Origin: Octopus bimaculoides
Lineage: Eukaryota
NCBI RefSeq assembly: GCF_001194135.2
Contig: NC_069005.1
Location: 34,652,110 to 34,716,109 of the forward strand
Direction: 5' to 3'
DNA: 64,000 nucleotides
The position numbers were made by a program, and so were the translations under genes. Position 1 is the stretch's first letter; every line of letters starts with the position of its first letter. The notes below the pieces were generated by a model. It did not search any database, was not told the DNA's origin, and worked only from the letters and a program-made list of their open reading frames with translations. Shown piece by piece: positions 24,711 through 59,215 of this stretch.

Positions 24711-24884
24711 TCAAGAAACCGTGATGACTACTTTGTTGGGCCGTTTCAGCTGGCTTTCTCGTACTAATGCTGTTAACATGCTGTTTTCATTCATTAATAA
24801 TTGAGAAGCTTTATCAAATTCCACAATTCTACCTTGGTCTAATACCATAACACGGTCATAATCATTTAGATGAGTCAGATGATG
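24711..24884 (-). CDS. SUR (ABCC8/ABCC9): SUR terminal exon HHLTHLNDYDRVMVLDQGRIVEFD...VITVS*
   Basis: 174 nt; ABCC VMVLDxGxIVEFD motif; TGA stop. Confidence 0.94.
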   Translation of the reverse strand, partial: HHLTHLNDYDRVMVLDQGRIVEFDKASQLLMNENSMLTALVRESQLKRPNKVVITVS

Positions 24885-27800: not shown

Positions 27801-30800
27801 CACACTTTTGCATTCTGAGTTCAAATCCATCTCATGTTCACTGTAATCATCATTCTTCCGGGGTCAATAAAATAACTGCAGATTGATATAATTCACTGTT
27901 CTCTTTTCCGAATTGTTTGTCTATGAATGAGTTAGAAATTACTATTTTTCACTGTCTACGTCCATCTTGTCTTTATTGTCAGGCATTAAATTGAACATTA
28001 AATATGTACAGACAGTTTGGAATTACTGAAATGAGATCTGACCGTTATGTTGAAGCACTGATCAGGTTCCAGAGCTACTTAGAAACTCTGACATTAATTC
28101 AAGCAGAGACTTGCCAAACATTTCAAGACATTACCAGCAGCAATGTATAGAGCTGTAGGATGGCAATCAATGGTACAAGACTTCAATAAATTTTCAAACA
28201 GACAGTAAAAATGATGACACACCTGGTGGATCTACTGAAGGTGGTGTCTCACAAGCATATTCCACAACCCTCTCTAAAGACGAGATGTTGTTCTCTAGTT
28301 CTGTTGCATGACGTGCTATCATGTTCACATAAATTGGCATCTGAAATAGATAAAAATTCTACAGTGCAATGAGGGAAAAATACATCAATATTACTTCACA
28401 GATGTACAGTAAAATAATGATAAAACCATCCAAGAAATTTCTCTACTCAAGAAGAGAACCAAAGAAATATGAATTAGCATGTATATATATTATACAGGTC
28501 GTATATAAAGGTTTTACAGAAGAGTATTGGCTCAGCTGCCCTGAAAATTCCAGCATTTATCTCCAGATTAATGTTGGGCATCATAATGACATCAGTCACA
28601 TTGTTTCTGATTTCCAATTTACATTCAGAATAGACAGTGATGTTTTGTATTTTGGTCAGTGAAAAGTTTAAGATTTCTCTAAGAACTAATATTTCATTCC
28701 CTGCATCACTATCCAGTCAGAATGCAAGAGGTTAATATTGGAAATCTGATATTAAATCCCTTTTTAATTATTCAATCAGAAACTGGATGCCAGTGTTGCA
28801 TATGTGAATCAGTTACACAATTCTCCAATGCAGGTATTGTTTATCAGAAATATATAAGAGCTGACCAGTCCAGCTGGAAGGGGAATTTCAGAGACGACTT
28901 GTAGGGGTCAGCAAAACTAACAAAGGAAATGTGAGCCTGTGATTCTACCAAAACATGAAGAAATCCTCAAATTCTACTTACCATGAGAACATTCAACATA
29001 CAGAGTCCAACTAATGTGCCATTTTCTTCGTTTTGGATGGAGAAAGCCAAGCTACCAAGTGATGCCAGTAATAAAATAAGGCATCCAAGGAAATCCTGCA
29101 ATAAGAAGTTCTTGTTAGAACAAGTTAACCATTTAAGTGGACAGAAACATTATTCTGGGAAGCTTATAACCATTGTTATTACAACTGCTGAATGTGATCG
29201 ACTGGCAGAATTGTTAGCACCATGGCAAAGATACATTGAGACAGTTGTTCAGACACTTTACATTCTTAGATTTAATAAAGTAAAAGATCAGTTAAGGCTG
29301 GGGTCAACTTGATTCACTTATGCCCCCAACCCACAAAAATTGCTGGCCTAATGTTGAAATTAGAAAGAGTAACACTTACCAAACGTATGGCTAACCACCG
29401 ATTCACAGCATGAATGTACAGGAAGACAACATTGAATACGTTTATTGCATGGGTGACATAACCAGTAAACCAGTACTGTACCCTGAAAATAGAATTTAAA
29501 AACAGGCAACTACAAGTCATGTGTTCTATCAGTTGTTTGACACTGAGATACTAAAAATTAGGGACTCAACTAATTTTTAGTTTTAATTACCGTTGCATAA
29601 TCATTTACACCACTCTCCCTAATTTGACTTCAGTAATTTTTAGGTTTTTGAGAGGAGAGCTAACTTACCTTGTTATTCCACTTCAAGAAAAATACAGGTT
29701 ATGATCATGTATTTTGATATATGAATGGTAAAGGACTGGCGAAATAACTAATTAATTAAATAAAAAATTAGTAATAAGCTGATAAATTAAATTAGTTGTG
29801 ACAAAAATGAATAATGGAAAACATTCAATATACCTGTAAGCTCTAATTGTCCGAAGTCCACTAAGAATTTCTGAGAAATGGTTAAAAAGAGGCAGTTTGG
29901 TAAGATTCTGAAGACGATTGAGCTGTCTATAAAATAGAAGAGAAATAATTTGCTGTAGAGAGTAGATTAATGAAAACTAGAATACTTTACCAACTCCACA
30001 CACGTTGGTTTGTGTGTGTCAGTTACACTCTACTTTGCTGACAAAGTATATTCTACTCTACCTGTGTAAACTGTGGGTATGGGAGTATGATATCACATAT
30101 ATACAATAATCTATACCCTTCTCATTTTCCCCATTTGTCTCTGCTGACGGAATAACCCAGAAACAGCTGTAAGACTGAATTTTTTTCCAATAATAATAAT
30201 GTATATGACTCGAGATGTTTGCCTTGTCTTAACGTTTGTTTTCCTATAGATACTGAGAGGTAATATTTATCTTTACTTAAACAAGGATGTCCTGTTACAA
30301 TAAACTATAGAGCAATAAATACTACAAGAGAAACTCTCATATTGACTTTTGGTGCAAAAGGAACTCTTGTTTCTATCCCTAGTGATGTAAACAACATTCA
30401 TCATCATCATCATCATCATCGTTTAACGTCCGCCTTCCATCTTTCTCTATTATTCTTAATTGTACATCGAACACTTTAGCCGTACTCCATCCACTTTCAC
30501 TATTTCACATTTCCTCTACTCTTCATGTTTCCTCTTCGCTTTATATTTACAAAAAACTTGTTTGCAAAATAGTCACTCCTATTTTTTTACTATAAAGTCT
30601 GTCAAGTACATTAATTATTCAGCAAATACAGAGAGCAAAACTTATGGAAAGCCACTTTTAATTTAATGTAGTCCGTTCCTATACATACACACAAACACAC
30701 ACACACACACACAAGCATCTACCATGCATAAACAAGCCTTGTTTGACAGGAAAGCATTAAGAAAACAGGAAAAGACTAACCTGATGGAAGGTCGGTAAAA

Positions 30801-33800
30801 TTTGAAGAGCAGATAAAAGAGTATTATTATAGGAACAGTGGCCAGTACAAAATAGGGCATGGCTATAGAACAGATGACCAACACTATGATTGCTTGTAGT
30901 AAGAACCTCAACAATAACTCTATGGTTGTTGGTAGGATCTGAAATAAACAGGATAGAAGTGGATATAAAATGGTATGTAAAAGTACAAAATTATGGTGGT
31001 GCTCTAGCATGACCACAGCTACATGGCTGAAATGATTAAAAGCATATGTGTGTGTGTGAGTATACAATCAGTGTACTGAAAAGATGCTCTTGATCAAGCA
31101 CAAACAGGACATCTACTCCTTCAGTCCAGGGCAAAACTCTGAGTAGACTCAATTTTGATATAATGAACACGCAGACATACACAAAGAGAGACATATCAAT
31201 GCAGTATTCTATGGCCAGATTCCCTTCCTGATGCCAGTTGTTACTTATATCCCAATAAATAAGTTACTTATTCCACTGGAATCTGAATGGATGGATGAAT
31301 ACAAAAATCTCTCAAGTGCTTTGCGGTCAATGCCTATAGAGAGAAGCAAATGTTCATTTTCTTCATTTTGCATCCATTTTGCTGTAGTGGACAGGTTGGA
31401 GAGGTAATGTCATTTTTGACCACAGTATTTTATTATAACCAGATGATCTTCATTGCTTACCATTTTTTGTTTTACAGATAAGAAAGTTTTCATTCCATTA
31501 TTTCAAGAGCACAGTTATTGCATGAAATATTCACCAGAAACGTAAGTACATAAACAACATATTTTTTTACCCACGCAATCTCAAGCAGAAATGACAACTT
31601 TCTGCTGTACGCGTGCATACATACAGATGTAAACATAATCACAAACACATATTACCCAGTGCCTCTGCATATCTTGTGAGAAAATGGATCTATAACTAGA
31701 ATGACCCTTTCCAAGGTGCAGACGTAGATAAGGTTCGGAACACCAACCGCTTCCCATGGCACCAATGCTGAGGGAGAGAGAGAAGTGAGTGGAGGCATGC
31801 TCAGCTGACCAACACCACAGACACTCAAAACATTGAACTTACCTGGTCAACAATACGACTGTCGGCTGAGAATGTATTGAGAATAGTGGCAGGTGGTGTT
31901 GACTCAAAGTGACTGAAACAGAAAATAAAACAGTCAAGCACTCACTTATTGAATGTTGTAGTTAACAGGTAACATCAATCAGTTCTGGTCAAGATACACT
32001 TAGCACATGCTACAAGCCTTAGTTTATACTTTTAAGACATGGATTTCCCCCTGGCCTACTTAATATCCAAACATACATACAGTAGGCATATAGGCCCATA
32101 ACATATACTTGTCAAACCTTCACTCACCAACACACCACAATCACACGGATACACTATATCCTCTCGCTGCCTTTTATACTGCAACTACAACAGCTCCTGC
32201 TCACAGGAACTAAAAAGCTATCTATCAAAACTGTTTCACTTACATCACAGGTAAACTGGTCAAATAGTGAAGCATCTTCTGATGAAGTCGGTCAGCTCCT
32301 CTCACTGTAGTGAACTTTAGTAATAGACCAGTCAACACTGTGACTGCCACACAGCTTAAACAGATGACCATATATAAACCAATATAGTAGGTGTGGTTGA
32401 CAGGTGTGAGCTGCAGACAGAGAAGAAAACAAAGGATCAACATTGTTACATTTTATGTGTGATTAGACTGTAGAAGATTGTCACCAGAAATCAAATTTAT
32501 ATTTAGTGTGAAAGGGATAGACCCAAGAAGTGGGATGAAGTGGTGTGAAAGGCTCTTGAGACACTGGGCCTCACTGAGGAAATGACATGGGACCAGGAGT
32601 TGAGGTGATTTGCTGAACTTGAGAAGATGTGTCCAGTTAAGAAGAATCATGGTCATCCATACATACAGGCATGTCTTTTGCAAGTGCCAGTGCCACATGA
32701 TGTACACATGATTGAAAGGTGAAAAGAGAAAAACAAAAAAACCACCTACCTTTGGACTGGTGATGGAATTATTCTGATGTATTTCATAATGCACAGAGTG
32801 TTTTGAGTACATCCAGTTAGCAAGCCAAAGATCAGAGGTGACGATTAAAGTGTGTTTGCACAAAAGGAGTATCACCAATAATAGAACCAGTGAAGAGGAG
32901 CAGAGTTTCAGGAATTCAAAACACATGCCAGTGGAGATTGAACCAAGGTCACGCAGATCCAGTTTTAATGATGGACTTTCTTCTTCTTCATTGTCCTCTA
33001 TCAGATAACAAACAGACATCATCATCATCATATACACACACACACACATTACATAAATAGCTTTTTTTTTAGTAATACTTACTTTTACTTTTCCATTACA
33101 TGCAAACCATGTGTGTATGTATACACATACATACATACATACATGCATAAACAAACAGACTATCTACACACATGTGTACACAAATTATGAGTTAACCTTC
33201 AATATTATATCAATATCAAAATTAATTCCAGAAAATACTTTTCCAAAATATTTAGAGAGAAAGAAAGAAACATTAAAGATTACAGAGAAATCTTAGAGAT
33301 ATTCTGTAAAAGAATTGCAGATTGAGAGAAATGAATCCACACAGATTCTCCTTTGTAACACAGCAGCAATGGTGGATTTATTATCACCTTCGCCTTAGCG
33401 AAGGCAGATGTATTGTTTGCAGTCGCATTTGTTTGTTTGTCTGTGGACAAAATATCTCAAGAACCACTGGATGGAATCGGATGAAATTTTCAGGGATGTT
33501 TGGCCTTGGGATTGGCATGAACTGATTAGATCTTGGGATCAATCCGGTACCGGACAAGGATTCTGGATTATTTTACCACTTTTTTTACTTAATTTTTGAG
33601 AGCAGCTGCATTCATTTTTAGTATTCCCGTTTGTGAGAGCAGTGAAGTTTATTTCAGATATTCTTATTTTAAAAATCATCTCCGGCTAATTGTTGAGAGG
33701 ACATTGGTGTTGCCTTGGCGGGGATTTGCGCTCTCTAAGTGCTCTTGTTAATTTTGATTTGTAATTAATAAGTTGTCAGAACAGATCCATTACATTCTTT

Positions 33801-36800
33801 AAAATGAAATCATTTAGGATTCATCTTCTTAAGTTGCTACTTTGGTCAGGTGCATGTCTCAGGTAAACAATTGATAAAGAACAGGTGGAAGAGTAGAACT
33901 AAGGAGAAACGGGTTTCCTGACTCTGTAACCGCAACTACAACCACATGCTGGGCAAAATGCTTAGCAGCATTCCATCCGTCTTTACATTCCAAGTTCAAA
34001 TTCTGGCAAAGCCAACTTTGCCTTTCGTCCTTTCAGGGTCAATAAAGTAAGTACCAGCTGAGTACTGGAGGGGGGGGGGGTCAATGTAATCAACTTACCC
34101 ACTTCTCTGAAATTACTGTGTGTGTGTGTGTGTGTGTGTGTAAAATCTACAGCTCTGAATCAACTGTCAACCTTCTCCTTATATTCAGACCAGCTCAATC
34201 TTCACTCTTGCACATTGCATCTGATTCCTCTGAGACAAGTTCTTTTTTTTTTTCCCTTCGGTTCAGTTGTATTATTTAAACACTGGGAAAAAGACATCTC
34301 TTCCGACCAGAAATGTAATGTTTCTTTCCAGACAGACAAGTTTGTCAACTCTACTAGTGTCCATAAGAGAGGGACAACTAAAGAGCGTTAATATTCTGAA
34401 AGAGAATAAATAGCACGTGTGTGTGTGTGTGATATGCATTAATGTGGCAGAAAAGAAGAAGGTGCATTAGTTTTGCATAAGTGTTTAAGCAGAGATTTAA
34501 CATGTGGTATACAATACAGGACGGTGCATCACTTGCAACTCTTCTACAGTGTACTACATGAAAAATACTACATATTTATATTGACTACCAGTAATAGTAG
34601 TGATAGTAGCAGTGGTAACAATAGCGAGGAGGGGAGGGTAGGAGGAGCCAGTGCAGAATACTTTACGTTCATAACATGTCTCCTTTGTGTAGTCATCAAG
34701 GGGAAGTAAATCATCTGAAAAAAGGTGACAGTTTAGAAGTGATACAGTCCAACCGTTCGGTAGTAAATACGGGCATTAACTTACCTCATAACAAGATTCC
34801 ATTTACAGAATTAACTGTTTCTGCTAAACAATTCTGGTTCTGGTCACCCCTCTCCCCTCTTTAAAAATGCTCACTATATACATAATATATACACACAACA
34901 TTATTTATATACATAATATATACACACAATATTATTTATATATATATATAAACTAGCAGTCCATCAGTTAGGACAATGAGTGTTCCAGTGGATCCAATCA
35001 ACAGAGCAGCCTGCTAATGAAATTAACATGCAAATGGCTGAGTGCTCCACAGACACACATACCCTCAATTCTCTCAAAAATATAAATGAACTTTAAATAA
35101 CTGCCATGACACTGACAACAATGCTGTAATTGTTACACAATAAATACTTTAAAAACGAAACTCTAGCTTTCTCGTCACTGTAGCAAAGAAGGAACTGCTG
35201 ACAGGTGGACGGTCAGCTTTCTCGTTCTGACTAAGTCCTTGGAAATTGGTTTATTGTATAAAAGAGTCGACAAAGACATGGGTGCATGCATAAAGGCATT
35301 CATTATGCTTGCACAAAACACATGCAAACACAGGGAAACATTCACAGATGATGATTGTGTTCATGCAAATATAGAAACCAGAAATAAACATGCATGTGGA
35401 CCCATACACACAGACACAGAACACAGGTATATACAAATCTACATACAGCCATACAAACAAACATACAAGCATACAGCTGAAATTGCTAAAAAAAATATTT
35501 AGCGTTTCTACATCAGACTTAAAACATTAAACTGTTTTCTGCAGAAAATACATGAAAATCAAATAAAATCATATTCTAAAAATATATAGTCTCCATGAAG
35601 TGTGCGTGTGGTGTATGGCAGTACCATATTTCTTCAAATAGGTAACAGTAAAGAGTAAAAACTCCCACCTCCTTTAGTCATGAATGACCATGGAATGGCA
35701 CCTAGAAAGTTCCCCTCCAAGGCACAAGTCCAAGCAAGGTTGTTTCTGGAAGACCAGCAGTAGCCCATGCATACCAACCCACCCTCTCCACACCACCAAT
35801 GTTATCCAAGGGAATGACAAAGAGCGATACAGCTTGGCACCAGTGATATCGCATCGCATTTTTACAGCTGAGTGAACTGGAGCAAAGTGAAATAAAGTGT
35901 CTTGCTCAAGAGTACAATATACAACCCGGTCTAGGAATTGAACTCACTACCTCATGATTGTGAGCCTGACACTCTAACCACTGAGCCATGTGTCTTCAAA
36001 TACAGGTAGAATATATCACAAGTTTTTTTACCCAGGTGGGCGATGGAGCATTTTTTGGCCAATAGGTAGGCAATATTGCAATTTGGCACAAAAGGTTTAA
36101 GAAACACTGCTTTAGGGTCTGGAACTGTAAAATAATTCAGATCACATCTAGCACACACACACACACACATTATATATTCAAGATGTTGTTAGTGTAGGGT
36201 GTTCCAGACAACATTAGTGACTCCGTCTACAGATGTGTCACACCAACTCAGCGATGAAACATCTATGTGGCCACTCAACTACCTGGAAGCAGGAGCCAAA
36301 TCTCCCTCAGATCACAGTCAACTATCTTGAAACACATTAGATGTTGTAGTGCCAAGATACATTGTGGCTGAATAAAAGACAAAACGGTCACAGTTAGATC
36401 ACATTTTTGTATCATTTGTTGGATTAAGGGGTGGGATTAGTGGGGGATAAACAGCACTCACATTATACTACATCCTACCATCATAACACCACAACCAGAT
36501 ATACACACACATATAATTGTGACTTTAATGTTAGACAAGATACTTACCTTCTTCCAATCCATCATCCTCAAGACTATTTTCTGTCATTACAGACATCTGT
36601 GATACCTGACGACTAATTGGTATCCCAAGGTTTGACTGAAACACAAATATATATACCAGTAATATACAGGGGTTTAAACACACAACACACAGGAAATTCA
36701 TTTGCAAGTTCAGTGAACCTACGACTAAAGATGACCTTAAATGTGTCCTTTTTTTAATATTATAAAATGTTAAGGAAGACTTAGCTACTATTTCTTGCAG

Positions 36801-39233
36801 ATTGAGCAACTATATAGAGACTCCACATTAACTCATGCCTTTAAAAGTAAATGTGAATCCACTCAGAGAAGGCTCAGCACACTTCTCACCTGTAGCCACT
36901 GCTGTCCCTTTTCATAGCTTTCTTCATGTCAATATATATGAACACACACACAAAATGATTGGAGACAACATACCTGTATAGACAGCTTGTGTACTGGTTC
37001 AGAGATATGGTCAAAACTAGTTCGCCGGTGCTTGTCAAACTCATGGTCAATATCCTGCCTGGAAGTTAACAAAAATACCACACCAATAAAATATAAACTA
37101 CACCTTGCATATATAAATAAATAATAAATGCGTTCTACTCTCTGTTTCGATGTTGGCCATACTGTCTTCCAAATGTATTACATTGTCCCCTAAGGTATCT
37201 CTTTGTAGATCTAAACCCATTCAGCATGTCAGAAATCAACTCTTCAGCATTTAAACTGACCCAAATATTCTTCCTGTTTTATGGTCAAACTGGCCAGATC
37301 CAGTCTCTCTCACCTACCCTACAATGCTAGTTCTAAAAAATATTCAATCACACAATTGAAATCTCAAAGTTACAAGATAATGCTGGATAAATTCAAAAAC
37401 ATGTGGATAAATAAATGTTACATTTGATAGAATAATCTGAATGCTATATGGTTTTAAAAGGGCAGCATCTTATTTGGAAACTGTTTTAAACTTAGATCTT
37501 TAGAATACAAGGTGACCACACTAAGCAATGATGTGGATAAATACAAACTTGCTACAAGATTAAAATATGCTTGAGGCACATTCAAATCCATAATAAAGAT
37601 GACTCACTGTGTTTTGTCACGGAGAAAATTTCTTGTCAACAGCAAGAAAATATAGTGAATGGCATTCTTACAGGTTTATTAAATATACTCCAAACAATTT
37701 AAACTGATAACGAGTTTAGATCTTTGATACTTCAGAGAGATTACATAGGAAATGAGTTGAAGTGTACATGTGTGTGTGCGCACGAGTTTAAATTTTAGAT
37801 CAACATAGAGGATAGTCACCCGAAACAATCATTGTTTGCCCTGGAACAGTTTCAAAGTTTCAGCCTAGGGTTCACACAAATGTTCTACAATAACAGTCTC
37901 AATGTACAACAATGATTGAGGGACAGACTCACACTGTACTTACGACACTGTATAGGCCATAGTAATACTGTACGTTCAAAGGACACAACATGCAATTAAA
38001 GATCACACAAGTTTGGTATGAAAATATTTTGAAGAAGATGGGGTGAAGGTAGAATAATAGAAAATAACTGTGATAAGGAATAAGAAGAAGAAAAAAAGAA
38101 AGAAATAGAGTAAAGTATTGTGATTACAAAAATAACAACAACAACAGCTGAAATATTGACTAGATGGTCATGTGACTACTTAATTCATTAGGCATATAGA
38201 ACAAAATGGTTTGGCGAGAAAGCATTATAGAATTGTTTATGAGGGGGAAATAAGAGGGTCATCTCGTTGGCTTTGCCATCCATTGCACACCCATACAACC
38301 TTTAAATTTTAAGGTCTTGCACATTTTTATTGTCCCCCAATACTGTGATTATCTCAGGTTTATGAATTATCAACAATCGAACTTCAGCCATTCATTCATC
38401 CAAATGTTTTGGTTATAATCCCTATCACATTAATAAATGGATAGAAAGTAGGACTTTGGGTGGGGTGGGGGACTAAGGGATTTGCACACTCTTCATGTAT
38501 GGCTCATGTCATCTCTTTGTTGTAGTTTTCTTACTGTGTTGATGCCGTGTGTGTGGATTTGAGTTAGCAGTTATTTTGTAATTAGCTATAAATATTTCCA
38601 GTTGTTGCTGTTGTGTTTGTTGTTAGTAAAAAAACACAACATTGAAGAAACAGAGAAGAAAAGTAACAACAGCACGTACAATACAATAATAAAAAAAAAA
38701 AATAAAACAATAATAATAATCCTTTCTGAAATTTGGTGGGGAGTAGGTAAATCAGGTACATTGATCCCAGTACTCAACTGGTACTTATTTTATTGACACC
38801 CAAAAGGATGAAAGGCAAAGTCGACCTAGGCAGAATTTGAACTCAGAACATTAAAGTCAGACGAAATACCGTTAAGTATTTTGCCCAGCATGCTAACAAC
38901 TCTACCGGCTCACTGCCTTAACAATAATAAGAATAATAATAATAATAAAAAAAATAATAGTGGTAAGAACCTGGTCAGAAAGAACACAAAAGTACATATA
39001 TACATATATATATATACATATATACATACATATATATATATATATATAAGAATAAGAAAGCATTCACAGAAGTAATACCTCTCAGCCAAACTGGATCTCC
39101 TGAAATCAAAGAATCAACAGATTAAATATTCCCCAACAGAACTTGACCAACATTCTTCAGAATAAAGTTGCACAACAGAATAAATAAGGATATATGTATG
39201 TTTGTATGTATATATGTAAGATAGATAGATATG

Positions 39234-39299
<66 letters not shown>

Positions 39300-42266
39300 T
39301 GAAAATAGTTTCATTCACTGAAAGTTCTGGCCTTCCCTGTTGTTATTGAGTCTCTTGTTACTGTTTTGTTATTTAAAACAACTTCAAGAACCTCAGAGAA
39401 ACAAGAAATCTTGAGTAGCAACAGGATGGAGTTCAAGATCCAAATGAATTGCTTAAACTTTATGCTTACTAAATACTTTTCTCTCTTCTTTGTACACCCA
39501 TACATATAACAAAGTGTGTGTGTGTATCTTATATGTCACTGGTCTCTTCATGTGTAAAGAAGATGTCCATTTATAGCTCTTCAGCCTTTTAAAATGGTTC
39601 TTCTCAATTTTGTAAAGTAGGGACAGCGAGCACCCACTCACTCCCATCTTCTGCCTCTCACTGGGATATGAGAATGAATACACAGCTACTCACATTGAAA
39701 GGTACACATACATACTCCCTACCAAACCAACTACAATAACTCTTTCCTAGGCATTACAACCAAAAAAAAAAGAGAAAAAGAAAAAAGAAAAAAACAATGG
39801 AACAAGTTCCCCTGAGAAACAAAGACAAACTTTTCAGAATTCAATGCCACAATTAGTATCTGTTATGACTGTACATAGATTTACCAAAACAATTATAGAT
39901 GCAGCTAAAAATATATTCATTAAGGCAATACAAGACATACAACTCTGATTACAAGACTGAAACCGTCAAACTGATAATGAACGGAGACAACCCCAGACAC
40001 TAAAACCAGAAATGTAGATATATATATATATATATATATAAATTTAAATACTAAGGGTGAAAAATTGAGTATTAATTTAATTAATATCAATTTAAAACCA
40101 GTGGCCTAGCATATTGAAAAATCTGAAGATTCAGAAAAATTATATTACATACATATACGAGGGATGACCACTAAGTGGACATCCATTATGCTAGAAGACC
40201 ACCTATGGTCTGACCATTAAGAAGAGATTGTTCTCAAGAAAAAGTATAGTTCCAAAGTTACCAATCACATGCAGCAGGTAACACTCTTGTTTTGCTGTGT
40301 TATGAAAGAGACATCAATAGATTAATCAAAGTGTGATTACATTAGTTTCTAAAATATCTGTGAAAACTGAAACTTCAATGAATCAACAAAAGAAGGAAAT
40401 GACACAATATTTGTATTGACTAATGAGTGATGGATGAATATGACAAAAGAGTGAATATTGAAGATAACAGATGCTTTGGGTGAGGTGTAAAAGTGATATA
40501 TGAGAGTGGACACCTCAACAAAGAGTTACAACCCCAGGCCATTTCAGTTTTTCAGTTTATATCATACTAAACATAAGTAGACAAAAAGCATGCCCTACTG
40601 CCCCTCAGGTCACCCAATACATGCACTGCACAGTCCAGAGTATTGAGCAGCATTTATAACAAAAAATGCAAGACAGAAGTAAAACCCAGTGACTTAGATA
40701 TACTCAGGTTGTGTGAGAGAGAGAGAGAGAGATCGGTTCATGAGAGAAAGAAAGAAATGTGAATACCTGGTTGGTATGTGAGAGAGAAAGAATGAGTGAA
40801 ACAGGACATACTAATGACCAAAATTCCAGAAAAGATAATAGAAACAGGAAACAGAAAAATACCTTTCTGGAAGACTTGATCTCCTCCTGGGGCAACAAAA
40901 TAAAAACAATAGCTTCATTACTGATATTTAACATGTTGTAACATGCTATTTAAGGTGATTAGAATAAATCATAGCTACATGTGATATGTTGTAATAGACT
41001 CTTAAGTTTTTCATTATTTATTCTTGTACAAGTACTTAGACCAGATCCTCAGTTTCAACAACCGACACAACAACCACATTAGTGTAGGAAGACCTTCAAA
41101 GTCATAGCTGAGAATGACAGATCATAACATACATTGAGAGGTCATAGCAAGCGAAGCGATAAGATGTATTGACAAGGCACGGAAGACCACGACAGGTTAC
41201 AACAGATCACAGGCAGTCATTGCAAACTAAAGAGATGTTGAGAGGTCATGGCACACAATGAGAAGTGACAGCAGGTCATCAGAGGTGATGACAGGCCATA
41301 GCAGACCACTGCAGGTCATAAAAGATGAAACTGACCCGGAAATAGTTAGAAGGTACTCCTCATTTGATTCCTATGCTGCAAAACCATAGACGTAGAGAGA
41401 GAGAGTATTTCACAACATGACATATAAGAGTACCTCAGTACCCAATATACAGAGAGTACCTAAAAAAGAAAAAAAGGATCAAGTGTCGTTCCTGAGCCAT
41501 AAGCTCAAGGCCAGTTTCCCAGAATCTGTGGTGTATACACCCACCCTAGATGGGACACCAGCCCACTTTAGGATTGCTCACTTTTGCCAAATGAGGGGAC
41601 TGGAACAACATGAAATGAAATGTTTTTGCTTGCCCAGTCCAGAAATTGAAACCACAATCTTATAATCATGAGTGTAACACCCTAACCACTAAGCCATGCA
41701 CCACCACAGAGAGTACCCAAGTACATGACATAGAAAGAACCTCAGTAGACAATAAATAGAGGATTCCACAACAACAAAGATGGTACCTCACTACAAAACA
41801 GGCAGAACCTTACAAAAGGATACAGAGTTCTTCATTACACAACACAAAGTAAAATTGACAACAAGATATAGGGTACGTCACTACAAGACATACAAGCAGC
41901 ACTACATGGTACAGAGTACCTCAAGACAGACAGTATAGTACCTCACTGCAAGATATAGAGTACCATGCCAAAAAAAAAACCTGATGATAGTTCATTATAA
42001 GGCATGCAGTACCACATAATAAAACATACAAAGTACCTTATTATGAAATTTAGAGTACTGCAAGGAAGACATGACTTTATTACAAGACATATGGAACCAT
42101 GCTATCAGACAGTCATGCAGTACTGCACAAGACAGAGACAAACTACTCTTGCTACTACTAATAACACTACTGATCAATACTTACTGATACTTTTGAAAAA
42201 ATATCAATATGTATTGAGTACTTCACTACAAGATCTTGTTCTGAAATATATAAAACCAAGCTGTAT

Positions 42267-42297
<31 letters not shown>

Positions 42298-42985
42298 TAT
42301 TTTGCAACATCCAGCTCACATACATACACATGCACACACAATACTCTACAGATACTGACAATATTTTACTACATCACATACATACACACACTCACAGTAT
42401 ACAGCTACAGGACAAGGACATGACCACATGACATCAATATATAAAAATCTATCAAAAAATACCTTTCAACCACATTAGTTCTTCTGGAAATAAAATTGAT
42501 ATAATAATGGAAGTTAGAAGATAAAGTAAAACTGATTAATTATTATAATTTATGTGTTCTTGACAATGATGATGATGATGTCGATAATTATTTAGGATTT
42601 AGGCCATCAATTACAAGGAGAGGGATGGTCAATTCCATCAATGAAGGGATTAAGCAATTATATCAACCCCATTTCTTCACTAGGACTTTATTTTATTGGC
42701 TCCCAAAAGAATGAAAGACAAAATCAACCTCAGTGGAATTTGAACTTACATTGTACAGAACCAGAACGAATATCACACAGTAGTTTCTTTTTTCTCACAG
42801 TCTAACAATGCTGCCACTCCACTACTATCACTACCGACATTGACCCCAGTATGCGACTGGTACCTTATTTTATTGTCTGCAGAAGGATGGACGACAAGGC
42901 AGACTTTGGCAGGATTCAAGCTCAGAACACAAAATGTCGGATTAAATGCCACTAAGCCTGTTGTACTAACAACAATTCTACCACC

Positions 42986-43022
<37 letters not shown>

Positions 43023-44335
43023 TCTACTAAAGGCACAAGGTGTAACTGGTACTTATTTCATCGACCCCCAAAAGGATAAAAAGCAAAGTCAACCTCAGTG
43101 GAATCTGAACTCAGAACATAAAGATGGACTAACCACATGGTTCCGGCATGGTACCTAGGCCAAGTGTCTTCTACTATAGTCTTGGGCTGACCAAAACCAT
43201 ATGAGTGGATTTGATAGACAGAAACTGAAAGAAGCCCATTTATATATATATATATGTATGTATGTATTTGTGTATCTGTGCTTGTTCTCCCACCATTGCT
43301 TGACAGCCAATGTGTTACATTCCCGTAACTTAGCGGTTCAGCAAAATAAACCGATAGAATAAATACTAGGCTTACAAAGAATAAGTCCTGGGGTTGATTT
43401 GTTCGACTAGAGGCGGTGCTCCAGCATGGCCGCAGTCAAATGACTGAAACAAGTAAAAGAATATATACATTATTCAGACAACATAAATACCAGAAAATAT
43501 TTGACTCCAATACAGATTTCTGGCAGCCATCTCGACGAGTTCAAATATAGACAGAAGGCCATGAAGTTGGGGAGAGGGCTAGCATTTACTTTATATACCC
43601 TGAACAAATATTAAAGATGTGCATCGCATAATTAATATAATGGCTGTAAATGGGATTAGTGAATGTCAAAGTAGAAGACACACCAAACAGAGTAAGGGAG
43701 ACTACTCGATATTGATGAAGGGAGGTAACTTGGTCTAAACAGACGTAAGTGGTCTATGTGTGACAGGGGCGGCTAATGTTGGCTAACTATACGGGGAACG
43801 AAGGAGGGTTAACACTATGTGAGGCTTCTCGGGAGACTTGTAATAATATGTGGGAGAGGGATAACATATTGTGGGTTAACACTTCATTCAAACATTATAT
43901 GGTTTGACCAACTCCTCCATTTATGTGAAGTTAATAAAACACTTAATGATTTCATGGGTTAACCCCACATCAATTATCTGGGTTAACATGACATTCAATT
44001 ATTTTAGCTTCTACAACAATAAAATAGGTTAATATCAAACACGTAATGGTTGTTACAATACAAAAAAATCAAGTGGGATAACATAAAATGTAGGCATGAC
44101 GAGAATAATCTAACCCAGATGTGGAGTGTAAAGGGGCTAACACTTACTTGTTATCCTTCAGTACCCTTCTCCAGCTTTCATAGAGATCAGGGTCAGCACG
44201 CTTTATGTCCTTCAATCTTCCCTGACATTTGATTTGGTGACGATTCACAACAATTATCTGCAGAGAAACAAAACATGTATTACTATTGTGTGGGGGGAGG
44301 GGGGTTTAGAAATTACTATCGTGTGTAAATATATG

Positions 44336-44372
<37 letters not shown>

Positions 44373-47300
44373 GACACAAATTACAGAAATATTTAGATGA
44401 CATTATATATTAAAGAAAATTCTAATTTCACGACAAATTGTTTCGTAACTTAAAAACATGTAAATAATTTATATCATATTTAATATTTAATAATAAATAA
44501 GTTACACCCAAACAAATACCCACACACATTTATACAACATGGTAACATCAACAAAAATAATGTAAAACAATGTCTGTGAAAGGAACTGACCTGATAAGCA
44601 TTGTAGATGTGAGGAATTTGTGGAGAGACAAGGATAACTGTACGTTTTCTTCTGATCATGCTGCGTACCACTGCCTCCTCAAAAACATTGCGTCCAAGGT
44701 GAGGCTCTATCTTGGAGAATGGATCATCCTGGGAACAAAACATGTTTAAAGTTCAAATCTTGTTTGAAACAACTTTTCTTTATTTCCACCCTTGGGAAAA
44801 TGAAACTGACTTAGGCCTACAATGTGTTTTTTTTTTTAATATTTAAGTTAAAGGAGGGGATAGGCAGTATCCATGACCCTTTTTAGAGCTTTCATGACCA
44901 GTTGGATGGGGGAGAGGGCTTAACCTTCAGACCAGACATTTTGTTAGAATGCTTACAACAAAGATGACACCTGTAAAGAACAGCCAAGGACCAGGTGCTG
45001 GGGTTAAACTTGCAGATGGATTGATGATGATGATGATGTGAGTTGTTAAGTTCAACTCAATCTTTAACCCCCTAAACTAGAAATGGTAGCAGCCAGTAAA
45101 TGGAATAACTGGAAGAGTCCATGTAAAGAAGGTGGGTAGATTATGCTTACCATAATAATTGTGTTTGCTGAGGAATAGAGGGCTCTCGCAAGAGAGATAC
45201 GCTGTTTCTGACCCTCTGTCAGTAAGATACCCTGAAAATAGAGACAAAGTCAAAAGTAGTAATTAGAATGGTGATGCTGTTGTTGTTTGGTTGGTTGAGC
45301 CAGTTCATACTTCTCACTTGCATCATCTTTATCTTCTGATAATATCTTTTGTGCCGTAAACCATTTACTATCAAAGGAAGGAAGGGTACCCCCTTCTTTC
45401 CCTTAATGTCCTAAACACGTGCTTATTTTGCTTAATGGATAATCTAGCGCTGGTGGAGACCCATTTTCTACTCTCGACAGACCAAATTATTCTATGGTAG
45501 CATCTCTTCATTGGCTGAACACTCAAAGTACAGCTCTAAATATAACGATAATGAGAGGATTGACTCGTTAACCTACCTGTTCACCAACTTCTGTCCGATC
45601 TTTGGCCGGCCACAAAGTCAGGTCCGTGTTCAGAGAAACAGCATGGAGTACTTTTTTATATCTGTAATAAGTAACAAATACTTTATAGAGACACACACAC
45701 AGATACCACCCAATACATTATGTACACACACCACCACTGCCACTGCCACCCAATTCGGTCCTCAATTCCTTATGGTTATCCATAGTACTTAATAATGAAG
45801 GTCTTCTCCATCATTTACGGTTTCTTTGATGAACATACATCCCAAACTGTTGTTTAATTTCATATTCTCCAAAGTTGATGTACCAATCTTGTCTCTTTCA
45901 GCAGCAGGAAAACACAAATGCCAATCACAGCAAGGAAACAGCACTGCAGCACACACACACACACACACACAGAGTTTCATAAAACATATTCAAGAAACAC
46001 TTACTTTCTATAATTGTATGGTTGACCAAAAAGTATGTTTTCTTGGACTGTGGCATTCATGAGCCAAGGTGGTTGCGAACAATATGCCAATGTACAGGCT
46101 CTGTAAGGAAACAGATTAATCGATCAGTTATAATAACAACTAAGAATGATATTAGTGAAAGAGGTTGTTGTGTTAACTTTACTGTTAGTGACTACGAATG
46201 GATAGCAAATTGTTGCAATAAAACTGTAAGATGAAGATGATGATGAAAACATATATACACACAGAGACAGAGAAACATACCTGTTCCACTCCATGACTCC
46301 AGAATCCAAGACCATTTCCCCCAACATGGCTGATAACAATGTTGATTTGCCTGACCCAGAGGGACCAGTTATTATTGTCATCTTACCTACAGAATAGAAC
46401 AACAACAGTAGTAGTAGTAGCAGCAGCAGCATGTGGTGGTGCCTACAGTAGTGATGGCACCAGAGACTACCAAATATCTCCAACATCACCATCTGTGTCC
46501 AAGTGAAGCAATATCATTCACATCCTTCACCACCCGTCCCCCATGCAAACCCTCAAATATTCTTAAAAGGTTAACCTTTCACATCACTAACCCATGCATT
46601 CTCCTCTCCAAATTAGAGAGAGAAAGAGAAAGATAAAAGGCAGAAATACTAGGAGTTATATACATAACTTTCAAAGGCGTGGCTGTATGGTAAGTAGTTT
46701 GCTTCCCAACCACATGGTTCCAGGTTCAATCCCACTGCGTGACACCTTGTCATGCATATCTACGTGTGTATACCTTTGTGTCTGTGTTTGTGGGCCCCCA
46801 CAGAAACATAGCATAACTGAGATGAAGGCCCTGTTGGTCATTTGGCCTGAATGCTATGCGACGACTGCCCAAACCGAGCTAACCTGGACCAACACAACCA
46901 CCACCATTACTACACTTTGCTGCCAAAAGTGATGACGAAGAAGAAATTTTGCAATAATATAAAAAATATGAGGGACGAACTTCTAGAAACTAAGATGCAG
47001 TTAGAGGTGAGGAGAGTAGAGATGCTGAAAGAACTTACCCAGGGGGATTTTAATGTTGATATCTTTCAAACAGGAAGATTCATCGGAGAGGTCCGTAGAG
47101 AAAGAAGCCTCGGAGATGTCAAGGGCAAGCCGGTGTTCCACGGTCGGAGCGGCTTCTGCTGCTTCTCCCTCATCTTCCATGATAGAGACGTTGCCGTTGG
47201 TATTTCGTCGACGATAATGAAACCCTCGTCTTTCGGCGATGTAGGTGTCGTTTTCAGAAGTGATTGAGTGCTGTGAAAAGCTCGGCCGACGAAAGGCAGG

Positions 47301-48769
47301 GTCAAGGATGTCCAGCACAGATGCCCCGCTGTTCTGCCGGCTGTGGTTTGGAGTGTGACCCAGGGGGGGACTACTCTCCACTGATGAGATACTTCCACGC
47401 ATCGCTCCATTGTGGAACGCCATGCTAAGCTGGTTGGTTTTTACATCATACTTCATCAGAGTGTCCAGCTTGTTCTAACAACAACAACAACATCAGTAAG
47501 AGTGACATCACAACACACACACACACACACACACACACCACAAAGAAGAAAGTGAAGGAGACGAAATAGGAGATCTCGAAACGTTTATAAAGAGTAGCAG
47601 CAAGAGGAAATGTAAAAGTTGAGGGTGTACAAAGAGTAGCAGTAAGAGGAGATATTATAATTGAAGGTGTACAGGAGGATTAGTTGAGGGTGTAAAAAGA
47701 GTAACAGTTGAGGGTGTAGAAAGAGTAGCAGTAAGAGGAAACATGACAACTGAAGGTGTACAGAAAGTAGAAATAACAGAATATGTAAGAGTTGAAGGTG
47801 TACAAAAAGTAGCAGTAAGAGGAGATGTAACAGTTAAAGGTGTAGAGAGAGTAGCAGTAAGAGGAGATGTAACAGCTGAAGGTGTACAAAAAGTAGCAGT
47901 AAGAGATATGTTATAATTGAAGGTGTAGAGAGAGCAGCAGTAAGAGATCTGTCTGGAAGAGTGGCAGTGATGTTTTTCCAAACTTACTAACATGGGTGGA
48001 ATTGATTTTGAAAATTCAGACATTTCTGCATCACTGGATCTTGAGTCCATCACCAGCAGAGTAGGAGTGGAACCTGTTGTCAGCCATGTGGACTAATTTG
48101 GTTTACAGAGGAGAAAATATCTGTAGCCCCCCTACACTACCAACTCCTGCAGAATAATGTGCCGTGCAGCCCACCTACATTGTAGGACCATAGTGTACCA
48201 TGTGGTCCACATACAATAGGACATAGTGTACCATATGGTCTACAAAGAGGTGCTAAAACGCTCCTGGCTTTAAGGGCATCGTGAAAGGCCTGGTTAAAAG
48301 CCCAATCTTCCGACTTCTTTTACAGGGCTTAGAAAGACTAAAGGACTGCTGTAATAAGTATGAGAATCTGAGAGGGGAATACGCTGAATAAAATTATAAT
48401 TAACTGATCCTCCTGCATTTTCTTTTACCCAATAGGTACAGTAGGATGTACTGTATGACGTGGTTGAACTATCATAGAACAGACTGTACCATGTGGACCA
48501 CCAGCACACCACAGTCCACCACGTGGTCCATTTTACTAGAGGACATTGGGTACAATATCCTCCTTATAAACAGAAGATTGAGTAAACAGAAAACTAAATA
48601 TATTTCACAGCAGCAGTCAGGGAACCATGAGTGTGTAAAGCACAGGCAGCAGGATTATAATAGCATGAAACTATTGGTAGCTCTTTCGGTGGTGTATTTA
48701 AATTCATATTTATCTCTCACTGGAGGGAGTACTTTTTTTCTTGACCTTACCTCTATCGGATCTGTAAAC

Positions 48770-48823
<54 letters not shown>

Positions 48824-51800
48824 TCACTGTAAGGAAAAGGTCATGTGTATGTGTATACACACACACGTCACAGTATTGAGAAGGTCATGTGTATAGAATG
48901 TGGGGTGTATATGCTGCAGGAGGGAAGGGACCACATGGCCAGATGAGACAGGGAACTTAATCCCATCTGATGATTCATTAATCCTATCTGCCATTGAAGT
49001 GTTAAGGCAATAAATCAGATGTGCAGAAACAAAGCAACAGAGTGCAGTGTATGGTGCATCATTGTGCACATCTCACCTTACAATCAATACAGGAGAACAT
49101 GGACTTGGCTGACTGGACAACTGATCGCAATCGGGATATGGAGAAGGACGACTGAAAGACAAGTTGTTACAACAATGATGATGATGATGACTATAGTGAT
49201 AGTGATGACAATATGGATGATGACGTTGATGGTGATGGTGTTACAGTAGTAAAGATGATTATAGTGATGGAGATGGTACTTTGTGGAACTGACACTGACA
49301 GTTTCAGTGGTATGTTTTAACATTGAAACAATGGTGACGGTGACGGTGTATTGTGTAATATGACTGGTGTTTCAAAAGACAAACGGTAAAACCCAAAATT
49401 ACCTCTGCTTCTTTCTGTACGTTGCTTGTCTGGTGGCACTTGGTGAAGAAGGCACTGGGGTGTTGGCATATCTGGCTGGATTGTAAGAAGGAGGTCAACT
49501 CTCGGCTGCTGCTCTTCGCATTCAGCAAAGATATGTAAATAACACAGAGGAAATAAAAAGGGTAACACATAACCTGGAAGGTGGCAGCAACAGAGAATAC
49601 TTGGCCGGGCGTCAGAACTGTTCCCTTTGAAATATGGTAGAAGAGAAAGCTCTACAAAGAAATAGAAGTGGAATATTAGAAGAGAATTCAAAGAGAATGA
49701 ATTAGTCAGCATCATCATTAAACATCTATTTTCCATGCTGGCATGGTTTGGACAGCTTGACCAGTGTTGGCAAGCCAGGAGACAGTGCCAAGCTCTATTG
49801 CCTGTTTCAGCATGGTCTCTATGCCTGGTTGCCCTCCCTAATGCCAACCGCTTCACAGAGTGGACTGGGTGTTTTTTGTGTGGCACCAGCACTGATGGGG
49901 TTACCTAGTAACTTGCAAGATAAACATTCGTCAACTCAGGGACTTCCTGTAATGGGTCTTGTCAGATAAAAATCTCTTTCTATGGTTTCTGATACCAGAA
50001 TGTGTATTCTGCTTAATGACAGCAGGGGTAGCTACAGGCCCCCCCTCCCAGGTCATATAAAGGGAGTTGGAGATGGTTCATATCCACAGGACCTGCCCCA
50101 ATGGCTGACCACCACTAGACTGGACCAAGAATATGTAGAGTCAGTTGGAGTTGTTCTTTAGAGTGACACATTAAACAAAGATATGTAAGTTAAAATCACA
50201 GGAACTTACCGCAGCTGTTGACAATAACGGGGCTGATGTAACAAGGAACTCTGCAAGAGAAACAATCAAAAGTTAATTAAGAAATCAGTAATCAATGCAC
50301 AAAAACAATAATTTGTTAGAGTCATTAGGTTATCCCATCAAAGACCTTGTGCTTTTGTGTGGCACTGGTACAAGTGCTTTTTTATGACACCAGCAGCCAC
50401 AAGCCCACAAGCAAAATTCATCGGCACACTTCTACAGCATCCCAAAAAGTGATTTCCAAAAATGTTTCCAGCAGTGGCAGGAATGCTAACAAAAGTGTGG
50501 AGACACCCAAGATGAATACTTTGAAGGAGACTGAATCAAAATGTTGAGTTTTTTTAATTTTACTTGTTTTTTGGCCAAAGGCCAAATATATGTATATATA
50601 TATATATATATATATACAAAAGAGAGAGAAAGTGTGTGTGAGTGTGAAAGCGTACAAACTGACCGATGATAGACTTGAGGTAGGCAATACGATACAACAA
50701 TTTCATCTCTTTCTTTCGATCCTTACTGACCAAACGGCTGAAACATTTCTCCCAGGCATTCAACTTGATCTGCTTGATGCCTTTTATTAGTTGTTTTACT
50801 TTCTTCACCCTCCTTTCACTGAGATTCTGAAAAAGAGAAAGAATGAGGCAGTAAGAGAGAGAGAGAGAGAAGTGGGGTATAATGGGTATAACAGAGTAAA
50901 GTGGTTGGGTCAGACAGACAGTCTAATGAAGTGGTTCTCAACTGCTGTTCATATAAGATTTTTGGGGGTCCATGCAACAAAATCGTAAATTGGGGATCCA
51001 CAATAGTATTTTAGGGGTCCCTGAAAATGTTTTGCTTTCGATGTGTCTCGTATTGGTCTGGATTGCAAGGAACAGCCAGGTTTCTTTCTCTGACATTTTC
51101 CATAATTCAACCTCCACAAGTTGATGTGTGGAAAACAAAATGGGAATTTTTGGAAGAAGTTTCTATAAAACTTGTTTTTAAACATGGAATGATTACGGGG
51201 GGTCCAGCAGAAAAGAATGGTGATCAAAGGGATCCACAGATAAGAAATAATTTGAGAACCCCTGCTCTATATAGGAGAGAAAAGCCGAGTTGAACAATGA
51301 CATATAGATGAAAGTAGAGTAGTTTGGTGTGTGGGGGAAGGGTCGGTAGTTTGGTGTGACAATGGTATTTAGGGAGTAGAGGGATAAGTAACAAGTGGAC
51401 AGTGCAGTTGAGCAATATTAACAACCACCCATATCTAACATACCATTATGCTGCCTTGGAGTCTAAACAGGTGCCGTGCAGTTGCAATGTGCATACATGT
51501 GTGCACACCAATGATGAAAAAGCCCATTACTGCACTGGAACCGAGTTTTAGGAAGACCACGATAAAACCAACAACAATCTGGAAAATAAATAAGAGAGAG
51601 AGAGAGCAACAGGTTGGATCATGGGGTAAGCATCTTGTACATGTAACTGTGGCAACAGAGTTTACTACAGGTCAGTAGTAAACTGGACATCAGCTAAAAG
51701 AGGGATAACAATAATAGAAAGGTCACTGAGTGTGGCCATGCTGGAGCACCGCCTTGAAGGGTTCTAGTCGAACAAATTGACCCCAGGACTTATTTTTTAA

Positions 51801-53712: not shown

Positions 53713-53743
<31 letters not shown>

Positions 53744-56700: not shown

Positions 56701-57283
56701 AGAAGCTTACGTAGGGTTGGATGTATTTGAGATAAGCCAGTTCTTCAGGTGAGTGTACAGGGCATGGTTCTTGGAAAAAAGCATATTTCTGGAATGAAAA
56801 GAGAGAAGAACATTATCATGAGATCATTATGAATGACAAAGCCTTCTTGCATTAAATAACTCGATCCCTAAATACAAAAAAAAACTCTTTAAATAAAAAA
56901 AAAAGGCAATATTTACAGAAGAGCTTGATTCGCAAATGGTTGGGTAATTTAATTTGTTAATATTCAGGCTGACCTAAACAGAGCAGAATGGCAGAAATGG
57001 TATTTGGCTAAGTCTCTTTATATTCTGGAGTCCGTCTCCCAATGTTATCAACAACACCGTTTTTATGTATGTTTTGTTTCCCATTACTGGCTTGTGTTGG
57101 CCAAAGTCTTATCAAGGGACAACTCTATGACCAGAGACTCTTTCTGTTGTTGATAACCATTAACTGGCTTTCGTTCACTGAAAGTGTAGAGTTACACAAT
57201 GTCATCATGGCTGCAAACACAATGTCACTGCTTTGTTCATACTGTGTCATGCAAACAGATATAGGAGGTAAATATTCACACAG

Positions 57284-57314
<31 letters not shown>

Positions 57315-59179: not shown

Positions 59180-59215
<36 letters not shown>

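Follow-up and report, generated by a model that had tools for sequence, protein, structure and literature searches.

A SUR gene with three microexons in its NBD1-TMD2 linker

The 64,000-nucleotide (nt) stretch of Octopus bimaculoides DNA analysed here (contig NC_069005.1, positions 34,652,110 to 34,716,109 of the forward strand; hereafter the window) contains a complete ABCC9-like (SUR) gene on its minus strand (60614..24711), made up of 33 constitutive coding exons and five cassette exons, with introns that are all GT-AG. Three of the cassette exons are microexons (ME1, ME2 and ME3), which lie within a 7,089-nt intron (44147..37059) and add short modules to the linker between NBD1 and TMD2 (Table 1). 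The gene model was guided by an Argonauta hians protein (GAB1608174.1, 1760 residues, 'ABCC9-like isoform X4'), found by an exhaustive protein search with the exon at the start of TMD2 (window 32750-32995) as query; the corresponding Argonauta locus, BAAFZT010000066.1:14962920-15022891, is called L001 below, and L001 positions count within this piece. Translated without any cassette exon (1745 residues), the model equals UniRef entry A0A0L8HSP2 of O. bimaculoides letter-for-letter.

The sequence places the encoded protein in the SUR (ABCC8/ABCC9) subfamily and not among MRP or CFTR proteins. When the NBD1-linker translation was compared with the PDB using phmmer, SUR2B (3.7e-63) and SUR1 (6.9e-63) came out on top, followed by weaker matches to plant ABCC2 (6e-54) and CFTR (~1e-53), and the name of the protein in databases is ABCC9-like. 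SUR proteins consist of TMD0-L0 and two TMD-NBD halves, about 1550-1800 residues altogether; the full-length octopus models (1745-1808 residues) fall within this range or near it, and their Pfam domains follow the order ABC_membrane, ABC_tran, ABC_membrane, ABC_tran, with ~240 residues N-terminal to these. Directly before TMD2, an acidic run (LEDDGLEEEDNEEEES) aligns with the acidic runs of SUR1 and SUR2, although it is shorter than that of SUR2 and interrupted.

Re-derived from the minus strand of the window, the coordinates, splice signals and phases of the three microexons agree with those given in a preliminary description of this DNA, and the joined peptide claimed there, KDN-K-RTNVVE-R-RRSSLPE-R-RSSLAE-R-QDID, was reproduced exactly. 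Every microexon has a pyrimidine-rich CAG acceptor and a GTATT donor (AG/GTATTT at ME1), and the claimed reading frame of each is free of stop codons. Each encodes a module of seven or eight residues terminated by Glu or Asp, and the AG left over at its end is completed to an Arg codon by the following exon. The constitutive exon upstream, with the peptide IIVVNRHQIKCQGRLKDIKRADPDLYESWRRVLKDN and two surplus bases AA at its end, aligns with ...LYEHWKTLMNR of SUR1 and SUR2.

Table 1. Microexons, neighbouring exons, conserved islands and further cassette exons of the octopus SUR gene, with their Argonauta counterparts (window positions unless marked L001; slashes mark exon boundaries).
Feature	Position	Strand	Length and phase	Peptide, sequence or match	Splice context and remarks
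ME1	42483..42463	-	21 nt, phase 2-2	(K)RTNVVE(R)	ttatttccag/AAGAACTAATGTGGTTGAAAG/gtattttt
ME2	40886..40863	-	24 nt, phase 2-2	(R/K)RRSSLPE(R)	gttgccccag/GAGGAGATCAAGTCTTCCAGAAAG/gtattttt
ME3	39099..39079	-	21 nt, phase 2-2	(R/K)RSSLAE(R)	ttgatttcag/GAGATCCAGTTTGGCTGAGAG/gtattact
Upstream constitutive exon	44257..44148	-	phase-2 end (..AAC AA)	end of NBD1, IIVVNRHQ...LYESWRRVLKDN	GTAAGT donor
Downstream constitutive exon	37058..36974	-		QDIDHEFDKHRRTSFDHISEPVHKLSIQ	initial G completes split codon
Argonauta ME1	L001 31293-31313			RTNLVE	ttttttcag/GCGAACCAATCTTGTGGAAAG/gtatttt; 6 nt differences, 5 synonymous
Argonauta ME2	L001 34217-34240			RRCSLPE	ttttgccag/GAGGAGATGCAGTCTACCAGAAAG/gtatttt; 21/24 nt identical
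Argonauta ME3	L001 37530-37550			RSSLVD	tttgatttcag/ACGCTCCAGCTTGGTTGACAG/gtagcaa; GTAGCA donor
ME1 conserved island	42424..42505	-		L001 31268-31352, 74% identity (blastn)	22 nt upstream, 39 nt downstream
ME2 conserved island	40856..40924	-		L001 34188-34247, 78% identity (blastn)	38 nt upstream, 7 nt downstream
ME3 conserved island	39060..39129	-		L001 37502-37574, 76% identity (blastn)	30 nt upstream, 19 nt downstream
Further cassette exon	49077-49151	-	75 nt, phase 0-0	SSFSISRLRSVVQSAKSMFSCIDCK	
Further cassette exon	34667-34714	-	48 nt, phase 1-1	DDLLPLDDYTKETCYEQ	

Every combination of the microexons occurs among annotated isoforms

A 90% protein cluster containing this protein has 21 members, of which 15 were listed and 14 fetched, and the stretch from VLKDNK to QDIDHE was tabulated. 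Splicing the window with all three microexons and the two further cassette exons gives RefSeq XP_014770068.1 (X1) exactly, while splicing with ME2 as the sole microexon gives XP_014770071.1 (X2) and splicing without microexons gives XP_014770072.1 (X3), again without a difference. The Octopus sinensis models X1, X8 and X10 carry all three microexons, X2 carries ME1 and ME2, X3 carries ME2 and ME3, X4 carries ME1 and ME3, and X5 and X7 carry ME2 and ME3 alone, respectively; three Octopus vulgaris models carry none, ME1 with ME3, and ME1. Pooled over the three species, all eight inclusion subsets and all ten possible junctions are annotated. The segments are hence in-frame microexons in the NBD1-TMD2 linker of a SUR gene, as first described, and the accompanying proposal that any subset could be skipped to give up to eight isoforms is borne out by the annotated models; direct splicing of 44148 to 37058 in all transcripts does not describe the gene, since models with microexons are annotated. 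These isoforms are computed coding models rather than reads, and their junctions are presumably backed by transcripts. We consider it nearly certain that the three segments are real, selected and alternatively used coding exons.

The exons themselves are not newly discovered, having been in NCBI models for years; the new part is how they are read. Gene predictors were expected to miss them; this is so in the original O. bimaculoides gene set (A0A0L8HSP2) and the A. hians model, but not in NCBI Gnomon, whose isoforms X1 and X2 include them. We found no paper on cephalopod SUR or on SUR-linker microexons in the literature.

At ME2, the acceptor context CAG/GAGGAG places tandem AGs 3 nt apart in both Octopus and Argonauta. 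The tandem acceptor itself is thus present as proposed, but the 21-nt form of ME2 that use of the second AG would give is unsupported: it is in none of the 15 listed isoforms (six more cluster members are not among these), and the listed models that contain ME2 all read RRSSLPE following the junction codon. GAG acceptors are disfavoured in general, and the conservation of CAG/GAG/GAG is uninformative here because the same bases code for Arg-Arg.

The microexons are conserved in Argonauta as protein-coding sequence

None of the three microexons is included in the Argonauta protein model (...VLKDNK/QDIDHELDKHRRTSF...). The Argonauta genome nonetheless encodes intact, in-frame orthologues of all three, splice sites included, and their absence from GAB1608174.1 is probably an annotation omission. 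A blastn comparison with the orthologous 10.7-kb Argonauta intron region yielded five collinear high-scoring segment pairs, which correspond to the two flanking exons, ME1, ME2 and ME3; the remaining matches were microsatellites and one non-collinear repeat. The introns are otherwise not alignable because synonymous sites are near saturation, with proportions of synonymous differences (pS) of 0.65-0.79 in the flanking exons, and the microexons are far more conserved than the intron around them.

Concatenated, the microexons differ between Octopus and Argonauta at 15/69 nt and 4/23 residues, with a pS of 0.625 and a proportion of non-synonymous differences (pN) of 0.094 (Fisher p = 4e-5), whereas the other two frames have pN > pS or contain stop codons. 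For comparison, the peptide of exon 44257..44148 is 100% identical between the species (pS 0.79, pN 0.012), and exon 37058..36974 keeps 27/28 residues (pS 0.65, pN 0.015). The microexons are constrained by purifying selection at the protein level. They are translated, and their conservation spans at least the incirrate octopods. Between Octopus and Argonauta, the R-R-x-S-L core is invariant save at the x position (RRCSL in ME2), with Ser and Leu kept.

The microexons stand apart from chance matches and resemble old tandem duplicates

The 10-mer GARAGGTATT occurs three times on the two strands of the window, exactly at the three microexon ends, compared with 0.36 expected, and this count was reached in 0/100 shuffles. 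Similarly, a 29-nt consensus with up to three mismatches finds these three sites alone (0.00 expected). Among 54,160 pairs of 21-nt, stop-free AG..GT candidates in the window, ME2/ME3 is the sole pair with at least 5/6 matching residues that is not a microsatellite or transposon copy; the other such pairs are microsatellites or repeat copies with 16-20/21 bases identical. Splice signals, however, do not by themselves set the microexons apart from decoys: the intron holds 289 in-frame, stop-free AG..GT segments of 9-51 nt, and the seven that pass a simple polypyrimidine and donor filter include ME1 and ME2, while ME3 (donor score 5/9) fails.

ME2 and ME3 are identical at 15/21 nt and 5/6 residues. 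In the claimed frame, their six differences comprise four synonymous and two non-synonymous ones (sd = 4, nd = 2) over S = 5.5 synonymous and N = 18.5 non-synonymous sites (Nei-Gojobori), or five synonymous and one non-synonymous along the shortest path; in frame +1 the values become sd = 1 and nd = 5, while a stop interrupts frame +2. In simulations of six random substitutions in ME2, at most one amino-acid change resulted in 0.5-0.6% of trials. ME1 matches the 21-nt register of ME2 at 11/21 nt (hand count) and ME3 at 13/21 nt, the latter implied by eight differences over a 24-nt padded frame.

Pairwise local alignments of the surroundings (+/-150 nt) cover the microexon, ~12 nt upstream and 5-13 nt downstream, in register, with no further similarity. 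The repeat families of the intron are microsatellites and a short interspersed nuclear element (SINE)-like element, and no microexon lies inside any of them; the SINE-like repeat, ~80 nt long, is present in four copies that are 66-85% identical (38776-38854, 42679-42757, 42855-42933 and 43044-43122) and overlap no microexon. A large tandem duplication within the intron was not found. Since similarity is confined to the exons and their proximal signals and no large tandem duplication is present, the copies are old duplicates of which just these parts have been kept, and since all three have collinear orthologues, the duplication is older than the split between Octopus and Argonauta. The in-register alignments and the synonymous bias of the ME2/ME3 differences thus support the previously suggested origin by exon duplication, strongly for ME2/ME3 and more weakly for ME1, for which the shared acceptor and donor context also speaks.

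Conserved flanks and weak donors hint at regulated splicing

Conserved flanking intron amounts to 45-61 nt per microexon, compared with 8-30 nt at nine neighbouring constitutive exons; a tenth neighbour, the TMD2-start exon, shows 34 nt upstream, but is not comparable, since its alignment ends within the exon. G at position +5 is lacking from 3/3 microexon donors versus 3/32 constitutive donors, and the Argonauta microexon donors are likewise weak. A TGC precedes the acceptor AG of ME2, alone among the three, at -8 in Octopus and -6 in Argonauta. Features such as long conserved flanks and weak donors are typical of regulated cassette exons, and we take the flank conservation, the weak donors and the ME2 TGC as hints of regulated splicing, short of proof.

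A block 20-40 nt downstream of ME1 (42424-42462 on the minus strand, L001 31314-31352) reads ATATTGAT..CATGTGG.CAT in both species and may be a splicing regulatory element. Rbfox-type GCATG motifs occur within 300 nt downstream of all three microexons, but this candidate was dropped, as the chance of such an arrangement is ~6% at 12 copies per 7 kb. ME3 is flanked by (TA)n/(TATG)n microsatellites (38984-39054 and 39221-39300), which form inverted-repeat arms of 69 nt with 83% complementarity; Argonauta has (TA)n tracts at the corresponding site upstream of its ME3 (L001 37220-37274 and 37418-37454). The arms may form a loop that influences splicing, or the arrangement may be coincidental.

Splicing changes the number of PKA-type motifs in the linker

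ME2 encodes RRSSL, an R-R-x-S-L motif of PKA type with Pro at +2, and ME3 reads RRSSL after ME1 or ME2, in which case the first Arg is the junction codon AG/G, and KRSSL otherwise; the Argonauta counterparts are RRCSL and RRSSL. The repeated kinase-site motif of the preliminary description is therefore found in ME2 and ME3, whereas ME1 (RTNVVE) contains no kinase consensus. The linker's single constitutive site of this type, RRTSF, is encoded by exon 37058..36974. With Kemptide (LRRASLG) as the reference for an R-R-x-S-phi match, the count in the linker rises from one to three by splicing, because RRTSF is constitutive and RRSSL is present in ME2 and ME3, and isoforms accordingly hold one, two or three such sites within ~30 residues. 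The 1808-residue isoform has six RRx[ST] matches compared with 0.69 expected, all of them in two disordered inserts, namely the pre-Walker-A insertion of NBD1 and the NBD1-TMD2 linker. No papers on SUR2 PKA sites were found within a limited literature collection.

The exon before the NBD1 Walker A motif (47039-47474, minus strand) encodes a Ser/Pro-rich, probably disordered insertion of ~140 residues that has no counterpart in vertebrate SUR. It carries RRPSF and RRRNT (RRPSM and RRRNT in Argonauta) and, alongside the linker, seems to form a second cluster of motifs for basophilic kinases.

Other features of the window

Of the two further cassette exons, the 75-nt one sits between ...VQKEAE and NKLDTLMKYD..., just ahead of the NBD1 insertion; it is included in RefSeq X1-X3 and is not in A0A0L8HSP2, O. 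sinensis X10 or the O. vulgaris and Argonauta models. The 48-nt one encodes part of the NBD1-TMD2 linker immediately N-terminal to the acidic, ED-like run and is missing from O. sinensis X8, A0A0L8HSP2 and the O. vulgaris and Argonauta models; as it lies in the same linker as the three microexons, this linker has four optional exons. A constitutive 41-nt TMD1 exon (50210-50250, minus strand, EFLVTSAPLLSTAA) escaped tblastn and was recovered solely by a targeted peptide search; without this exon, the gene model cannot be closed.

No Kir gene is present within the 64-kb window. Assembly gaps (runs of N) occur at several places, for example at ~61.7, 22.7, 17.3, 15.5, 8 and 6.7 kb, and TG, TA and AG microsatellites are abundant; neither touch SUR coding exons. 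In a word-indexed protein database that seems to be short of long eukaryotic proteins, the 199-residue spliced linker had no match, and a 398-residue NBD1-linker query gave just distant ABCC fragments, from Saccoglossus and from arthropod-like Logan contigs. Exact look-ups of spurious open reading frames of the window that overlap ME2 and exon 37058 returned no match. A degenerate DNA pattern for ME2 likewise matched nothing in metagenome and prokaryote genome collections, and scanning the metagenome collection with protein guidance was equally negative.

A possible role in tuning linker autoinhibition

In SUR2A, the basic R helix (E929-Y938) on the NBD1-TMD2 linker is wedged between the NBDs, where it holds activation back, and a six-residue SUR1-like insertion in this helix relieves the inhibition and enhances Mg-nucleotide activation (PMC10276813). 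The same authors describe phosphorylation of the SUR linker as an open question and point to the R regions of CFTR and Ycf1p, which are relieved by phosphorylation (PMC10276813). Further along the linker, the acidic ED-domain of SUR2B is autoinhibitory (PMC8694068), and CFTR activity is graded according to how many of its sites are phosphorylated (PMC8640958).

Judged by their location and chemical character, the octopus modules seem well placed to tune such autoinhibition through length, charge and phosphorylation. Our favoured explanation overall, which we regard as probable, is that duplicated, combinatorially used cassette microexons are coupled to a phospho-tuned autoinhibitory linker. 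A basophilic kinase, PKA or a relative, would phosphorylate the serines of the R-R-x-S-phi motifs, and the number of modules would set how far the linker's autoinhibition of NBD dimerisation is relaxed by phosphorylation in combination with the length and charge of the linker, with the outcome that Mg-nucleotide activation of the octopus KATP channel would be tuned by tissue or state. The linker would then act as a small-scale CFTR R domain, adjustable by splicing, at the position of the SUR2 R helix. Taken separately, the phospho-regulatory mechanism of the modules is put forward tentatively, as a call that falls slightly short of even, and it is doubtful that PKA-site number (one to three) and the length of an autoinhibitory segment equivalent to the R helix are both set by a combinatorial code of eight isoforms.

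Several observations weigh against this interpretation. Gnomon-like pipelines may merge locally supported junctions into full-length combinations, some of them nonexistent. Constraint on the microexons is looser, their pN (0.09) being about six-fold higher than in the flanking exons. The number of phosphosites cannot be the whole story, because ME1, which has no kinase motif, is equally conserved. Alignments disagree on whether the microexon segment is homologous to the vertebrate R helix: one HMMER alignment sets VVERRRSSLPER on TVTERKATEPPQG and another shifts the whole linker, so this homology is not robust. Literature searches found no phosphorylation, expression or electrophysiology data on any cephalopod SUR. 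A more specific proposal, that ME1/ME2 are homologous to the TVTERK/R-helix segment of vertebrates, was prompted by the first of these alignments and by ER[KRW] motifs seen in fragments from Saccoglossus and arthropods; it was set aside as a lead only, since the second alignment contradicts it.

The modules could instead work without phosphorylation, by altering the length, charge and helical register of the R-helix-equivalent segment and so resetting autoinhibition, in parallel with the six-residue difference between SUR1 and SUR2; per module, the change would be +2 to +3 from Arg and -1 from Glu. The six-residue insertion in the SUR2A R helix suffices for greater Mg-nucleotide activation (PMC10276813), ME1 is conserved (RTNVVE/RTNLVE) and alternatively used although it has no kinase site, and every module has the identical charge pattern of a terminal Glu or Asp followed by Arg. 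However, the residues that are invariant across species and paralogues are exactly R-R-x-S-L, with x free, which points to motif recognition rather than to bulk length or charge, and the RRx[ST] matches are strongly clustered in disordered inserts; we therefore judge this explanation unlikely.

Splicing might also control surface delivery of the channel instead of its gating. RKR retention signals and their masking by 14-3-3 are established for the vertebrate Kir6.2/SUR1 assembly, and in the octopus protein the ME1-ME2 junction would create an RXR-type endoplasmic reticulum-retention signal (ERRRSS), which 14-3-3 recruited by phosphorylated ME2, with its Arg at -3 and Pro at +2 of the second Ser, would mask. 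RRR is formed solely when ME2 follows ME1, and RRSSLP with its +2 Pro is retained in Argonauta as RRCSLP. ME3, on the other hand, lacks the +2 Pro, ME1 lacks the motif altogether, and isoforms with ME2 alone begin KRRSS and contain no RXR; the argument is motif-level reasoning alone, and disordered linkers often contain short Arg-rich motifs. This makes such a trafficking switch quite improbable.

That the segments are chance pseudo-exons, decayed duplicates or non-coding splicing noise, as their unremarkable splice signals (289 candidates, seven past the filter, ME3 donor 5/9), the lack of +5G and their omission from two annotation sets might suggest, is effectively refuted by their presence in RefSeq models, matched exactly, and in O. 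vulgaris coding-sequence models, by their position as the sole conserved islands of a 7-10 kb intron, by a strong synonymous excess in one frame only, and by a shared 10-mer found at these three window sites alone.

Relation to known systems and significance

The microexons insert into the same linker, in the same family, as the SUR2A R helix, within ~15-25 residues of the conserved ...LYE-x-W... end of NBD1 (Ding et al. 2023, PMC10276813). Both segments are basic and Arg-rich (E-R-K-T-L-R-R-A-M-Y in the SUR2A R helix, V-E-R-R-R-S-S-L-P-E-R in octopus), although residue-level homology between the modules and the R helix is not established. In vertebrates, SUR1 and SUR2 differ here in a fixed manner, as products of two paralogous genes, whereas in octopus a single gene varies the linker by alternative splicing in steps of seven or eight residues. 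To our knowledge, no phosphorylation of the R helix is known.

The R domain of CFTR (ABCC7) and the R region of Ycf1p are likewise disordered ABCC NBD1-TMD2 linkers with several dibasic R-R-x-S sites. However, the CFTR R domain is a constitutive insertion of ~200 residues with eight sites, whereas the octopus linker has one to three sites, two of them on optional microexons. The R region is considered unique to CFTR (PMC8640958), and we rejected the assignment of the octopus linker as a CFTR-type R domain, given its length of ~115-155 residues, an alignment to CFTR that is confident in the NBD part only, and the lack of sequence homology. By analogy, it may nevertheless be R-domain-like in its working, though not a member of that family.

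Conserved, neurally enriched cassette microexons of 3-27 nt have been described (Irimia et al. 2014, as summarised in PMC8395343). The octopus microexons resemble them in being at most 27 nt long and a multiple of three, in inserting into a surface or disordered segment, in their conserved flanks and, at ME2, in a UGC near the 3' splice site; unlike typical neural microexons, they are three paralogous exons in tandem with every combination used, and their donors are weak rather than strong. With tandem exon duplicates they share a common size class, phase and splice context, a spacing of 1.6-1.8 kb and a similarity limited to the exon and its proximal signals, but while classic tandem duplicates are usually mutually exclusive and encode a folded segment, the octopus modules are additive, freely combinable and located in a disordered linker. 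Two known kinds of element, the tandem-duplicated cassette microexon and the ABCC linker bearing PKA motifs, are combined here.

The locus provides a clean case of microexon birth by tandem duplication, and shows how far annotation pipelines diverge on exons of 21-24 nt. Control of SUR and the KATP channel by the disordered NBD1-TMD2 linker is a live question, the R helix and the ED-domain having been seen by cryo-electron microscopy only in 2021-2023, and the octopus gene offers a natural allelic series of eight isoforms that differ by modules of seven or eight residues at this linker site. Two of these modules carry optimal PKA motifs and evolve under purifying selection. The series is suited to testing the effects of linker length and phosphosite number on Mg-nucleotide gating. 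If the combinatorial code were to hold, octopus tissues would use splicing to set how sensitive a single KATP channel gene is to cAMP and Mg-nucleotides, and the linker would represent a convergent, splice-tunable 'mini R domain', where vertebrates use two SUR genes and CFTR a fixed R domain.

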